A stretch of 64,000 nucleotides of DNA from Aplysia californica (lineage: Eukaryota), in NCBI RefSeq assembly GCF_000002075.1, contig NW_004797808.1:322102-386101 (forward strand). The letters run 5' to 3'. Shown here piece by piece: positions 11,701 to 44,700 of the stretch. A program made the translations under genes and the position numbers. The notes under the pieces were generated by a model, which was not told where the DNA came from, did not search any database, and saw only the letters and a list, made by a program, of their open reading frames with translations. Within the stretch, counting starts at the first letter, position 1; each line of letters opens with the position of its first letter.

Positions 11701-14700
11701 GCTTCTGGTGCTGCCCTTTTGTTTGTGTTAGAGTTGTGTTTTCTCTGTTGCGGCACCATTGCGCCTTGTGTTGCTTCACTTTTGCTTTCTTGTCAAATTG
11801 AAGCTGCAATTACCAAGGTGTACTGCCATATATTTTGTGGTCTAATCAGTTGTCTTGGTTTAGCATGCATGTCGGCTTACTTGCCGAGGATGGACTCTTG
11901 TGAGCACACCTAAAACATGCACTTTTCTGCTTTATAGTCTCCATTTTTTTGTCTCCATTCAATGTTCGCTTTCGAAAATTTAAAAAGCTGAAAGTTAATA
12001 CAAGGGGTAAAAATCATACCGTTTTCAAAATTGCTTGTCTGCTGTAATGTTGGACCTTTTACTGGTTTATTGCTGCACAAAGTATATTATAAAACACTGG
12101 CAAGTGTTGTGCTTTTTGTTCACCCTTGTAACTGTTCATCATTGATTGTTTTGCAGTTTGTTCAATATGTCAAGCAATAAGCAATTCAATTTGTATTATG
12201 GTAGTCAAAAGGCTATATTTGGTTTCAGGCCTTGTTCTTCACGCGCATCCATGTTTATTCCACTGTTGTGCTTATAGGTACTGAAAAGAACGTCGTGGTT
12301 GGTGGCAAGCATGTCACTGTGTTGCCATCTTGCTCTTCATCTGCTCGCCCCATCTCACACCTCTCAGGTATCTTGCTGTTGGTGTGCAGCTTTTGAAGGC
12401 GTTTATGATTGTTCTGCCTAGTCGTGTTCATTGGTTTGATGTAGAGAAGCTTCCTTTGTTTTCTTGACACATTAGGATATATTTGTTTCTTTTTTCTTTC
12501 TGGGTTTGTTTTGTTTATATTTTTAAAGATGATGCGATTTTAAATTTTTTTTTTAAATGTAGGAGCTTATAATAATGGTGTTTTTTATTTGGTGAATTAT
12601 GTGGAATGGCATTTTTGCAAATATTTGTCTTGTCTGCTTTTCAGTGGTATTGCCAGTGTTTGATGTTAAATGATACGTAGTAAGATGTCAGACAAATGCA
12701 TGGCTGTGTGATACATGTGCTTTTTAGATTGCAACTTGTTTACAGTTAAAAGACCACTGCTGTGTCATAGTTGCAATGATAAAAGACATTTTGAACGGAT
12801 AACACTATGGGTTCATGGCAAACGCATATATTCACAAATTTACCTCCACTGCTCAAGTGTTAATGATCTGAAGTATACTCACTTAAACAAGTTGACATGT
12901 GTAAACCCAGTACATCTGTATTATATCTAAATGTGCACTTGATCAGCAGTTTGGAACAAGTAATGGTCTCGAAGTTGGTACTTGTGATCATATCTTTACC
13001 TGTATGAGTAGTTTGTAATACCACCTTCTTTGTGTATTGCCAGCTATGAATTCATCAACCACAACCACTGCCAGCCTGACAACAACACCTCTGACCACAG
13101 CCACAACATCGGAGTTGCAACAGCACTTATCAGGCAAAAGTACAGATATCAAGCCCAACTTACATGCTTTGAAGAGTGGAACTGCTTTCAGGTTAGTTTT
13201 TGCTTTTTTTTTTTTTTTTAACGCTGTGTCGTTCTCTGTAGGTAGTTATTGGGATTATATAATGACAAAATACTGCACGTCTATAGTGTGATCTTTTGAG
13301 TATGCATGCATGCTTCATATCAATACTCATGTTTCCCATTGCATTGCTTTTGAATACTGTGAGGAAGAGAGAAGAAATGCTGATTTAATTGATTTTTGTT
13401 TATGGGGTCTTCAGGTGTATGCAAGGAAAAATGAAGTTACTTTTGCTTACCATATTGTTGATTATTGTACTTCTTTATTGTTTTATGTAAAATTATGTGG
13501 ACAGGATTAACGTGTCTTTAAATTGGCTATATGTAAACACTGTACGTTCGAAATTAATGTCTACAAGAAAAACTGAGTGTCAAGTGTGCCACAAAATTGA
13601 TATAGATCTAATACATCTTTTGTTTTAGTAGTGTTTTGTAATTTTTGCTTGATAAACTTTCACTGAATTATGGTTTGGTGCAAGAGGGTTTGCTAGTGAT
13701 CTTTTTGTAAAAATAAAACTAGACGAATAAGAGCAAAATAAGCTCTTCAGTACGGTATTAATGTAGGAAGTAATCGAGAATTTTATGTAATGAAATGTGA
13801 TTGAAAGAGTTAGGTTTGAAGCTGTTTGCGAAATGTTATATCAGTCACGGCCATCAACATCAAGTATAAGGACTTGGGTGTGGGGTCACAGTATGGTCAG
13901 GAACTCAGGGTTCAAAGACTTGATGTTTAATTAGGTCACCTCCTATGATATTCTTTTATCATTGTTCTTAATTAATTCTATGCCTCATTTTCTGGATGAA
14001 ATAGGTGGGTTGCCCTTATAAGTGCCAATTTTTTTTTGCATGACAGATCATGTGCACAGCTTTCAAATTATACTTGGGAATTAACAATATTTGCTTGGTG
14101 GCTGATACCGAGATGCATTCGTTCATGTTGAATGATGTCTTAAACTGCAGCCACACATCAACCATTAGTATTAGGTGCATCATGAGCATGTCTACCGCAT
14201 GACCAATATCTAATGTTGATTACATCTATGCATATATGGCTTTTGGGACTTTATATATTTTTATACAGGAACTATAACTGTAATGAGACCTTCCACTCTT
14301 CCCGATTTAGTCGGGATATCCCGATTTTTTTTCACTTGTGACAATTTAGCTGGAAAGTAACTGATTGGGTAATGTTTATTTCATATTATCCTCACTGTAT
14401 CTCAGACCAGTCTTTTTCTTTTGATAAAAACTGTTACGTTAAAGGCAAGGTCAGGCAAATTTCAGAGAAATCTTTTATTGGAAAATGCTGGAATAGTCGA
14501 AATTGTGAATAGGATCAGCGTGCCAGTTAAACGTTCTTTTATCAAGAAGGAAAGGATTCAGTTTTAAATTAAGATTATTTGCTGCTTCCTGCAATTTGTT
14601 TGTCCTATTAGATTTGATTTGTAAAAAGTCCATTGTTTTGGGGCGAAGTTTTTGGTCAAGGGATAGTGTGGCTTGTGTTCGGCAAATGAACACACATTAG

Positions 14701-41700: not shown

Positions 41701-44700
41701 GGTACTGTTTTGAAATGTTCACTCCCAAAAACGCCAGTATTCAGCGCTAGTGACTGGTGAAAGGGCTCAGTAGTCAGTGAGTTAAGAACAGATGTCTGTG
41801 TGGATTGTACTGAAAAACGTCAAAGGCATAAAAATGTAAATATTCTGTTTCCACGGATTCAAGCTAAGGAAATAACTTTGGCAGCCATTTTCTCACTAAT
41901 TTTACCTGTGAAATCAAGCTACCCCTACCTGTTTCTCAATCCCAAATATCTCTATAATATATTGTATTTAAGATAACAGATTTTGTTGTTGTTGAAAGCA
42001 AGGCAAATGAAAAGGCTTTAAGGTGATACCAATAACTCCACATGCCCAAAAATTGACGAACACCTGATTCCACCAGGTTGTGACACAAGTTATATTTTCT
42101 GTAGGAATGGTTTTGTTGTCTCTTTGGATGTTGAATTTTAGCCAGATATTTGTTTGAAACACAGTCACGAATAATATGAAATTGTTCTTTGTCATTTGGC
42201 CGAACATTGAAGTCGTCAATGATTGGTGTACTTTTAACCTTCAACTTTGAGAAAGACTGAGGCAAACAATACGTATTCTACTTTCTATAGGAATGGTTTC
42301 ATTGTCTCTTTGCATGTTGAATTTGGTCAGATATTTATTTGGAAGACAGTTTCAAATAATATGAAATTGTTCTTTGTCATTTGACCGAACATTGAAGTCA
42401 TCGATGATAGGGTTGTTGGTGTACTTTCTACCTTCAACTTTGAGAAAGACTGAGACATGTAATAAAAACCAGAATAGCTAAAGCAGTTAAGCATTGTGGT
42501 TTTGGTGGTGGTGGGGGAGTGGCTATCATGAACTGTCTTGTGACTTGTAAAACTTGATTTTGGGGATTTATATGTGTACATACATTCTTTTATAATTATG
42601 TCATTTGTCAAATTCAATGGGTTGTCTGGTTTGTCTGAACAGGTAAACTCCAGACGCTTGACCTGTTGTTGCGACAGTTGAAGTCTGGACAGCATAGGGT
42701 TCTTATTTTCACTCAAATGACCAAGATGTTAGATGTATTAGAGGCTTTCCTGAACTTCCATGGCCATAGATATCTCAGGCTTGATGGGACCACCAAAGTG
42801 GAACAACGACAGGTTTGTACATATTCAAGAACCTTTAGAACTGATGCGTATCGTCTGGCACAGATGATTATATTGAGAGGCGTTGGAATGTGCTTTTTGT
42901 TTAGGTAATTTAAAATTTCCCTGTTCGAGGAGACCTTAGTACCTCTTTCTTTTGGATGTAATGTGTTTTTTTTAACTTTGAATTGAGAATATGGCCATTT
43001 ACCAATGTCAGTTTTTATTGTATGAAACTGTTCAGTGACCATGGCCATACACTAATTTTCATGGAAAAGTAGGGATGTGGAGACCAGTTCTATACAACCT
43101 TGAGAATCTTTGAGACATTTACTACTATAACTCTTGACATGGTGCCGCAAGGTTCTGTCGATGGTACTTTTATGTAGCTTTTATTTTCATCCAAGGTTTT
43201 GCCTAAATCCTTTTTATCTGATTTGTGGGCGTGTTGGTTTAACTTTTGATCTTGCTGTATCTACCATTTTACGCTATGCCTACTTGTTTCTATTGCCTGT
43301 CCTGATAATATAGAAAATCTTGTTACGAGTAACTGAAGTACGACTTAATTACGTGCATGTGCACTGGTATGACTCATAAACTTCTTCCCAGTTTTTGAAT
43401 AATCTTAGTTTGTTGCAGTGAAATATAGATGTTACAAGGGCTGAACTACCATTTACTGTGGCTCACCATCATATTGGGAAGGCATTGTCGTTTTGATTGA
43501 AGTATCCTGTACTTGTTTGGGATATTTTTATTTTTTTTTCGTATGGTTAAGTGAAATACTCATTTTTTAATTTTCTGCTCCACAGTATTTGATGGACCGC
43601 TTCAACGCTGATCCCAGAATCTTCTGCTTCATTTTATCAACACGTTCCGGGGGTATTGGTGTGAATCTGACAGGGGCAGACACAGTCGTCTTCTACGATA
43701 GTGACTGGAATCCAACAATGGACGCCCAGGCTCAGGACAGATGCCACAGGATAGGCCAGACGCGAGATGTCCACATATACAGGTACGGGCGTAATGCAGC
43801 TAATTTGGGAGCTTTTTCCAGGCAAGAAGTCTGCAGACACTAGCACCTGGAGCTCTCTACTTATGCCATTATTTTTGCTCTACGACTTGGGGGCGCTTTC
43901 TTGTGATTGATAATTTACCATCCACTTTCTTCGAGCTTGTTTGATGTAACCCAGTGTTGTGAAACCCCTGGCTCTTCTGAGCACCAAAAGAAAAATGGGT
44001 TTTTATTTTTCAGCATGTTCTTTCCTGTCATTGCCAATAATGTGGGGTTGTGTTTCTCTTTTATTTTATAATCACAGATTATGTGTAAACATAATCTGTG
44101 ATGACTGTGCTGTTGAAGCCAGAAAGGTTAGCAGAGTGAGCCCAATTCCCTGTAAGAATTTCTCTTCTGACATCCACCCCTTGGCGTTCAGATGACCTTA
44201 TGCAGTTGCAAGCGCCGTAAAACCTCTACTAAAACAAACGTAATCTATGATGCGTGGCGTTCTGAAAATAGGGCCAACTAATGATATGTGGACGATAAAG
44301 TTTGTACATGTAAATTAGCCTATATTTTTGGTGCCACAAACACTTTCGTATCGGGTTTACCGTAAACTGTTAGGAGCTTGATTTTCAACGCTTAGTAGGT
44401 AATAGATCTATCTTTCCTCTCTAGGTGGGTGGTTGGTGGGTGCTCTGGTGTGGTTTGCTCCTTCTATCCTATCGAACATCTGTCATTCTGATCTCTCCTT
44501 CTTTTTTGTGTCTGTTACTCTTTTGTAACACCTCTAATCTTCGGCACTTACATGACCTTATTGTGTTGCAAGTGCCGTAAAACTCTTACTAAAACTAAAG
44601 CATGTAATGTTTCCTCTATAGCGTCCTCAAATTTGAACATTGTGTGTCAAGTAATTGTTTAGAATTTAATATAAATGCACGGCTTCCCCCCCCCCCTGTC

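Follow-up and report, generated by a model that had tools for sequence, protein, structure and literature searches.

The repeats described here lie in introns of a domino/EP400/SRCAP-type gene of Aplysia californica, within a 64-kb stretch of genomic DNA (hereafter the window; G000:C538:322102–386101 of a 927-Mb assembly). In all likelihood, the introns of this gene hold clusters of intron-encoded genes for small nucleolar RNAs (snoRNAs) of the box H/ACA class that belong to four independent families and were multiplied by local duplication; their role as guides is predicted. The four families are A, B, C and a D/E superfamily, each of which would have been expanded locally. Between 8 and 10 copies look like working H/ACA snoRNAs, as predicted from their features: the eight copies of families B and C are well supported on sequence grounds, and the two copies of family E are probable. 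The other nine copies, which make up A and D, are orphans or relatives in decay, for which fold, covariation and targets offer little or no support; in several of them the decay is plain. In the initial annotation of this DNA the gene had been presented as an intronic host of several H/ACA families in multiple copies, which local duplication produced, and this description is supported for families C, B and E.

Repeat sets, copy number and host gene

The repeat sets were located by self-BLAST and with a repeat finder, both run on the window, in which positions 59493–60348 are a stretch of Ns (one more such stretch occurs in L005, the locus on contig C88 that is described below). Five local repeat sets were recovered where they had been placed initially, all of them on the + strand between 14.1 and 43.1 kb. 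Their members start at 14098, 14721 and 15885 (A, three members), at 15290, 16131 and 16410 (B, three), at 24962, 26344, 26905, 27528 and 28080 (C, five), at 39471, 40037, 40228, 40419, 40601, 42138 and 42323 (D, seven) and at 38530 and 42991 (E, two). A figure of about 20 copies had been given; it stands for repeat members, which number exactly 20, but A3 is an inverted duplication rather than an H/ACA RNA, and without it there remain ∼19 H/ACA-shaped units on the sense strand of six introns.

The five sets had also been called unrelated, and this does not hold. In an alignment test, the local-alignment z-score was 4–11 for E–D pairs, and all remaining pairs of families stayed at <2. The alignment of D with E is full-length, and there are four independent families rather than five because D derives from E.

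A whole-genome search found three copies of B and three to four pieces of A, both confined to the window locus. For family C it returned the five window copies and one five-copy cluster on contig C88, for D the seven window copies and a single one on contig C426, and for E the two window copies and two more on contig C328. The high dispersed copy number of transposable elements or satellites, in the hundreds, was not seen, and the genome-wide counts are tiny: 3–10 copies per family in 927 Mb, at one or two loci.

It had further been stated that the repeats are better conserved than their flanks. Such a contrast is informative only where the flanks are themselves homologous, as in B, C and the tandem units of D, for which the statement was borne out; the flanks of A and E are non-homologous and the contrast is uninformative for these two families.

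The host gene is on the + strand. Its exons were searched for domains individually, with no joined gene model: the open reading frame at 9653–10570 matches EP400_N and the exon at 42642–42812 matches Helicase_C. Open frames and splice motifs were seen for the exons at 14929–15058, 28321–28479, 39066–39268 and 42642–42812, and a GT..AG junction that joins the third of these to the fourth (39268 to 42642) is present in contigs of three RNA runs. Therefore, all seven D copies lie in one 3.4-kb intron, and E1 and E2 lie in two neighbouring introns. The domains and the junction agree with the initial identification of a domino host on the same strand as the repeats. Since the copies are on the sense strand of the host, they would be transcribed within its pre-mRNA. 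If they behave like all known H/ACA RNAs, dyskerin/Nop10/Nhp2/Gar1 would bind them, and splicing, debranching and exonucleolytic trimming would presumably release RNAs of ∼125–140 nt that end 3 nt after the ACA.

H/ACA features of the repeated units

Hairpin-hinge-hairpin-tail folds, which had been attributed to every repeat, were obtained as minimum free energy (MFE) or consensus structures for B, C, E, A1, D2, D4 and D7, with folding z-scores relative to shuffled sequences of −2 to −5.3. This fold was poorly formed in A2, D1, D3, D5 and D6 (z-scores of −0.56 to −1.31), however, and A3 forms a single long hairpin instead. The H box (ANANNA) is canonical in A1, A2, B1–B3, C4, D1, E1, E2 and the C88 paralogues; in C1, C2, C5 and D2–D7 the hinge reads ACAUUG or ACAUCG, the last base of which is not A. 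An ACA follows the 3′ stem in 18 of the 19 units, the exception being D6 (GCA). The distance from pocket to box falls within 14–16 nt for the 5′ pockets of B (16 nt), C (15 nt) and E (14 nt) and for the 3′ pocket of C (16 nt).

A blind shape detector, which looks for two terminal-stem hairpins, an A-N-A hinge motif and ACA on both strands of the whole window, recovered 14 of the 19 units. Under its relaxed rules the background elsewhere in the window amounts to ∼0.3 hits/kb/strand (17–19 per 64 kb per strand), so that an H/ACA outline by itself says little about an individual copy. It is unlikely that all of the locally repeated families display this outline on the sense strand by chance.

Rfam was scanned at the gathering threshold over the whole window, at E-values of up to 1 over positions 12000–45000 and at E-values of up to 10 in three sub-regions. 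At the gathering threshold no match was found across the window. The relaxed scans recognized family C through the covariance model ceN100, at scores below gathering, but returned no significant match for A, B, D or E. A likeness to SNORA3 that had been noted initially was not recovered, ceN100 being found instead; SNORA3, SNORA30 and SNORA49 gave no match in any of the Rfam scans, the presence of these three models in the library copy being unconfirmed.

Targets were sought in ribosomal RNA (rRNA) of the organism itself, with shuffled guides as controls (100 strict, and 60 relaxed for family B). Three families had been credited with pockets complementary to rRNA. Against the shuffled guides the number is two, B and C. 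The pockets of A and D and the 3′ pockets of B and E were also searched against the small nuclear RNAs U2, U5 and U6, with nothing above shuffled controls. When the predicted sites were transferred to human and yeast pseudouridine numbering by landmark motifs, the offsets were inconsistent and no claim is made from them.

Family C, a ceN100-like snoRNA in five tandem units

As far as its sequence allows a classification, family C is a bona fide H/ACA snoRNA, with predicted expression. All five window copies match ceN100 over its full length on the + strand (27–37 bits, E-values of 3e-4 to 5e-2 in a 5-kb search), and four of the five C88 paralogues tested match it with 32–37 bits. Under the Rfam rule the family would count as a distant homologue or functional equivalent of ceN100, not as a member. 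The alignment to ceN100 has the pocket strands in common and not the shape alone.

RNAalifold applied to the ten C copies (window and C88) gave two hairpins. The 5′ hairpin, guides included, is invariant across the ten. In the 3′ hairpin about a quarter of the bases differ between the two clusters with the stems kept, and four pairs have both of their bases replaced. Between clusters no change affects the 5′ pocket strand, the ACA box or the initial bases of the 3′ strand. The window copies fold with z-scores of −3.8 to −5.3 relative to shuffles, and conservation in the snoRNA part is 0.95 versus 0.66 and 0.76 in the homologous flanks.

The 3′ pocket can pair with 5+7 bp (12 bp, one of them G-U) around 28S U2786, and none of 100 shuffled guides was as good; it also surpassed the shape-only control candidates from the window. 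The 5′ pocket, whose guide strands match the ceN100 consensus, can pair with 3+8 bp (11 bp) around 28S U2747, a fit that is not significant on its own (P ∼ 0.12). In the numbering of the organism's own 28S rRNA, U2747 and U2786 are 66 and 105 nt beyond the CCAGCGAAACC motif of domain IV and 39 nt apart. Family C may thus be a dual guide for these two uridines of 28S domain IV. A literature search for targets of ceN100 returned nothing relevant.

All five window copies are on the + strand. C1 (24962–25095; 32.5 bits full-length, z-score −3.81) is a predicted dual 28S guide, and the pockets of C2 (26344–26477; 36.2 bits) likewise fit U2786 and U2747. The hinge of C3 (26905–27040; 27 bits, z-score −4.69) is further broken by a 2-nt insertion. 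C4 (27528–27661; 35.1 bits, z-score −5.34) is the sole window copy of the family with a canonical H box (ACAUCA), and C5 (28080–28213; 36.6 bits, z-score −4.28) has the real exon acceptor ∼107 nt downstream of it.

The polypyrimidine tract and the AG, with roughly 10 nt from the start of the downstream exon, recur as a copy at the end of each C repeat unit. The duplicated acceptors are at 26050–26070, 26575–26590, 27140–27155 and 27765–27780, and the real one is at 28312–28330. Hence the stretch that underwent duplication included the snoRNA and reached into the exon. Inverted repeats on the + strand occupy the spacers between C2 and C3 (26598–26744), C3 and C4 (27164–27360) and C4 and C5 (27785–27916). 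They form hairpins with arms of 46–49 nt that are 83–88% complementary (z-scores of about −9 to −10); the left arm starts directly after the duplicated acceptor copy, and the right arm holds CAG|GTTTGAG in three of the five units. The possibility that these hairpins are a family of miniature inverted-repeat transposable elements (MITEs) was rejected, as a genome-wide search found them at the window locus only.

The spacer after C1 also contains an ∼850-bp insert (25172–26018) bounded by inverted terminal repeats of ∼90 nt (25172–25265 versus 26018–25932, 74% identity), which resembles a DNA-transposon relic.

The second five-copy array lies on the minus strand of contig C88 (L005, G000:C88:1106000–1115000), with copies at 2203–2353, 2708–2858, 3357–3507, 4000–4150 and 6646–6796 of that locus. 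Its H boxes are canonical, its spacers are unrelated and no obvious coding exons are nearby. RPL8 was considered as its host and rejected, the L2-domain exons being on other contigs.

Family B, a predicted guide for 18S rRNA

Family B is a good candidate for an H/ACA snoRNA. In each of its three copies the H box reads AGAGAA, an ACA box is present and the fold has two stable hairpins (z-scores of −3.0 to −4.0). They are 93% identical in the snoRNA part versus 0.57 and 0.42 in the homologous flanks. The 5′ pocket, 16 nt from the H box and closed by an upper stem of 10 bp, can form 5+8 = 13 uninterrupted Watson–Crick base pairs, with no G-U, around 18S U536 (GUAAU-UG-GAAUGAGU). The score of this pairing was reached by 0 of 100 strict and 1 of 60 relaxed shuffles, and none of the 16 scorable hairpins among ten shape-only control candidates from the window was as good. 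These figures point to the 5′ hairpin as a putative guide for 18S U536. The relaxed Rfam scans gave nothing significant for the family, and the best matches, to ceN86 (19 bits) and SNORA46 (13.5 bits), serve as leads only.

The copies, each a candidate with the same predicted target, are B1 (15290–15416; AGAGAA, ACA followed by an AUU tail, z-score −3.98), whose guide strands are identical to those of B2 and B3, B2 (16131–16257; z-score −2.96), for which the pocket pairing was scored, and B3 (16410–16536; z-score −3.69), all on the + strand.

Families E and D, a single lineage

Family E is probably a working guide, as predicted from its boxes, fold and invariant pocket. E1, E2 and their two paralogues on contig C328 have canonical boxes (ACACUA or ACAUUA, and ACA), and the consensus of the four copies forms two hairpins with three compensatory pairs. 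The 5′ pocket is identical in all four. Its fit to 28S U1341, with 3+7 bp (10 bp), is not above the null, and U1341 would be a weak candidate target. A match of the 5′ hairpin to Schizosaccharomyces pombe snR5 in the relaxed Rfam scans (13 bits) is insignificant and is a lead only.

E1 (38530–38658, + strand; z-score −2.45) has the H box ACACUA, an ACA at 38653 and compensatory pairs relative to E2 and the C328 copies. A 171-nt contig from an RNA run covers it at 38486–38656 and ends 2 nt short of the predicted 3′ end. E2 (42991–43120, + strand; z-score −2.22) has the H box ACACUA, an ACA at 43115 and the 5′ pocket of E1 and the paralogues.

The C328 paralogues (L006, positions 2319–2456 and 4060–4196) are 1.7 kb apart and their 3′ lower stems are better formed than those of the window copies; in E1 as in E2, one arm of the 3′ pocket is not the same as in these paralogues. 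A pairing of 15 bp between the 3′ pocket of the C328 paralogues and 18S U1006 (P ∼ 0.03) was downgraded, as the 2-bp closing contradicts the consensus upper stem.

The similarity between E and D is highest for D1, which is next to E1 and represents an intermediate (z-score of 9–11 in the alignments). The full-length homology thus marks D as an offshoot of E, tandemly amplified in units of 181–194 nt. D1 (39471–39610) has the H box ACAUUA and a weak fold of its own (z-score −0.73). The tandem array D2–D5 occupies 40037–40737 and has ACAUUG or ACAUCG in the hinge: D2 is at 40037–40171 (z-score −3.88), D3 at 40228–40365 (−1.31), D4 at 40419–40556 (−2.97) and D5 at 40601–40737 (−0.86). D6 (42138–42271; z-score −0.92) is a dead copy with a deletion in the 3′ hairpin and its ACA changed to GCA, and D7 (42323–42460; z-score −2.02) has an intact shape. 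All seven are on the + strand. D2, D4 and D7 fold clearly better than shuffles; D1, D3, D5 and D6 do not. D1 is the only copy of the family with a canonical H box. The pocket geometry of D is atypical, with 12–13 nt to the box and a 3′ strand of the 5′ pocket of 3–4 nt.

Between D5 and D6 is a high-copy insert (40750–42080), with read and contig depths hundreds- to thousands-fold above those of its neighbours, contig depths of thousands to tens of thousands and many loose ends. The insert is probably a transposable element, and it split the D array after the tandem amplification.

Family D may be a diverging tandem offshoot of E that would have lost recognisable targets and part of its fold. 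Across the families, the pattern suggests birth and death of snoRNA paralogues within a single host gene.

Family A

Family A is an orphan of uncertain function and the least supported of the families. A1 (14098–14227, + strand) is an H/ACA-shaped unit with the H box ACAUCA, an ACA at 14222 and a z-score of −2.47, and was found by the blind detector. A2 (14721–14843, + strand) has diverged: its homology with A1 is limited to ∼97 nt at the 5′ end and to the 3′ tail, and it folds no better than shuffles (z-score −0.56), with an H box ACAUUA and an ACA at 14838. A3 (15885–16032, + strand) was rejected as a third H/ACA copy. It is an inverted duplication of the 5′ part of A, with arms that align to A1 and A2, one of them as reverse complement, and it forms a single hairpin of ∼70 bp with no ACA tail (MFE −55.9, z-score −8.3); its only Rfam match is a weak microRNA (miRNA)-precursor look-alike.

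Alternative explanations

Several observations weigh against the interpretation of these clusters as snoRNA genes. The nine ceN100 matches (27–37 bits, E-values of 1.6e-4 to 5e-2) are far below the gathering score of 80 bits, and for A, B, D and E nothing significant came from Rfam, relaxed E-values included. In the hinge, the last A of ANANNA is missing from every window C copy except C4 (four of five) and every D copy except D1 (six of seven). No target above shuffled controls was found for A and D in rRNA, U2, U5 or U6. D has no net covariation (covariation term +1.67), and the 3′ strand of its 5′ pocket is merely 3–4 nt. The predicted 18S and 28S sites are not matched to experimentally mapped pseudouridines, and the sole RNA run with raw reads is polyA-selected and, over the D/E region, has zero depth even on exons.

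A narrower explanation has close to an even chance of being correct: most copies, chiefly those of A and D, would be functionless intronic duplications, relics of one or two real snoRNAs, and stable RNAs would come from B, C and perhaps E alone. It would account for A2, D1, D3, D5 and D6 folding no better than shuffles, for the loss of the ACA and part of a hairpin in D6 and for the failure to find targets for A and D or covariation in D. The chance background of H/ACA-like shapes under relaxed rules, given above, is in its favour too, and in A and E the conservation relative to the flank merely marks the end of the duplication. Against it, the snoRNA-like part of the D tandem units is more conserved than the homologous spacer (0.855 versus 0.69, or 0.94 versus 0.855 when intact copies alone are compared), six of the seven D copies have kept the 3′ pocket strand as well as the ACA box, and D2, D4 and D7 have z-scores of −2 to −3.9. 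In addition, low-depth contigs from RNA runs that contain spliced mRNA overlie E1, D1 and D3–D5, which is compatible with stable intron-derived RNAs.

A more elaborate scenario, which we regard as unlikely, makes the gene a snoRNA nursery. Its units, duplicated in tandem within single introns, would consist of snoRNA, acceptor and a 46–49-bp spacer hairpin, with the hairpins or the reiterated acceptors supplying the cuts that free several snoRNAs from one intron, and the lineage from E to D would be midway in the loss of rRNA targets, so that it is either decaying or gaining a new, non-rRNA target.

The arrays might instead encode small RNAs derived from hairpins, that is, a cluster of miRNAs or endogenous small interfering RNAs. 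A3 and the three C-spacer hairpins are long and near-perfect (z-scores of −8 to −10) and weakly match miRNA-precursor models of plants and animals in Rfam, at 28–37 bits against gathering scores of 72–140. Yet these hairpins are distinct from the H/ACA-shaped units, which show large internal loops and box motifs and no miRNA-like stems, and we consider this explanation very improbable.

The most remote alternative, that the repeats are transposable-element or satellite families (short interspersed elements, MITEs or minisatellites) sitting in introns by chance, could appeal to their tandem or dispersed arrangement and to the true transposable elements nearby (the high-copy insert at 40750–42080 and the insert bounded by terminal inverted repeats at 25172–26018), but it is effectively refuted, because the repeats are real, local and low-copy (3–10 copies per family genome-wide, in one or two clusters), every copy has the orientation of the host, the model of a curated snoRNA family recognizes C, and an unsystematic look at the copy ends revealed neither terminal repeats nor poly-A tails nor target-site duplications.

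The interpretation that we favour thus remains that of H/ACA snoRNA clusters in four families. A genome in which such RNAs are largely undescribed would thereby gain 8–10 credible H/ACA guide RNAs, so far unannotated, for which rRNA targets are predicted, and repeat-masking of intronic tandem arrays would hide such RNAs. The relation of E to D, the decayed copies and the second C array form a compact natural series on the birth, retention and loss of snoRNA paralogues. The spacer hairpins and duplicated acceptors offer a testable handle on the release of more than one snoRNA from a single animal intron; together with the divergence of D from E, they are the most interesting loose ends of this locus.

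Other repeats in the window

Dispersed repeats common to several introns occur at 5108–5291, 17203–17296, 18362–18618, 30477–30775, 44106–44235 and 57935–58063. One copy (30476–30612) is also picked up by the H/ACA shape detector and matches 28S U3535 over 13 bp that are rich in G-U. A 1.4-kb direct repeat (675–2034 versus 45308–46654, 88% identity) flanks much of the host gene, its two copies being 44 kb apart.

Comparison with known snoRNA genes and hosts

The closest known counterpart of family C is ceN100 of Caenorhabditis (Rfam RF01607). C matches the whole model of 132 positions, both hairpins included; the hinge and the ACA align to it, with the H-box position canonical in C4 only. The strands of the 5′ pocket are shared (AGAGUCAC / GUGCUA) and the 3′ pocket is very similar (UAUGC / CACCU). 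However, C scores 27–37 bits against a gathering score of 80, its upper stems and loops are unrelated to those of ceN100, and it is present as two five-copy arrays; the last base of the H box is non-canonical in most of the window copies.

In yeast and plants, RNase III enzymes cut polycistronic snoRNA precursors at stem-loops between the snoRNAs. The long stable hairpins between consecutive C copies could be cleavage sites of this kind. Such polycistrons form transcription units of their own; here, by contrast, an animal gene harbours the array within a spliceosomal intron.

Homologous remodeller genes are also snoRNA hosts in human. SRCAP hosts SNORA30. In EP400, SNORA49 is located in the intron between exons 28 and 29 (PMC12824223). 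The human gene thus carries an H/ACA RNA, in its case of ∼137 nt, in an intron, as does the homologous Aplysia gene, and D and E are in introns provisionally numbered 28–30 in the initial annotation, adjoining the Helicase_C exon. The human hosts have one copy each and no arrays, and neither SNORA49 nor SNORA30 had an Rfam hit here at E-values of up to 10.

In rice and Drosophila, several snoRNA isoforms can be found in a single intron, an arrangement termed 'intronic gene clusters' (PMC2780460). The clusters described here resemble them in that sense-strand isoforms share one protein-coding intron, arose by tandem duplication and break the vertebrate rule of 'one snoRNA per intron' (PMC2780460). 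The view of this gene as an unusually large snoRNA host is to be softened accordingly: it is a multi-family, multi-copy host, but intronic clusters are known from rice and Drosophila (PMC2780460), and neither a new RNA class nor a new mechanism is revealed, the layout being already known. Besides the organism and the families, what differs from the clusters of rice and Drosophila is that four families are spread over six introns of one chromatin-remodeller gene and that each C unit carries a copy of the downstream acceptor and a 46–49-bp spacer hairpin.

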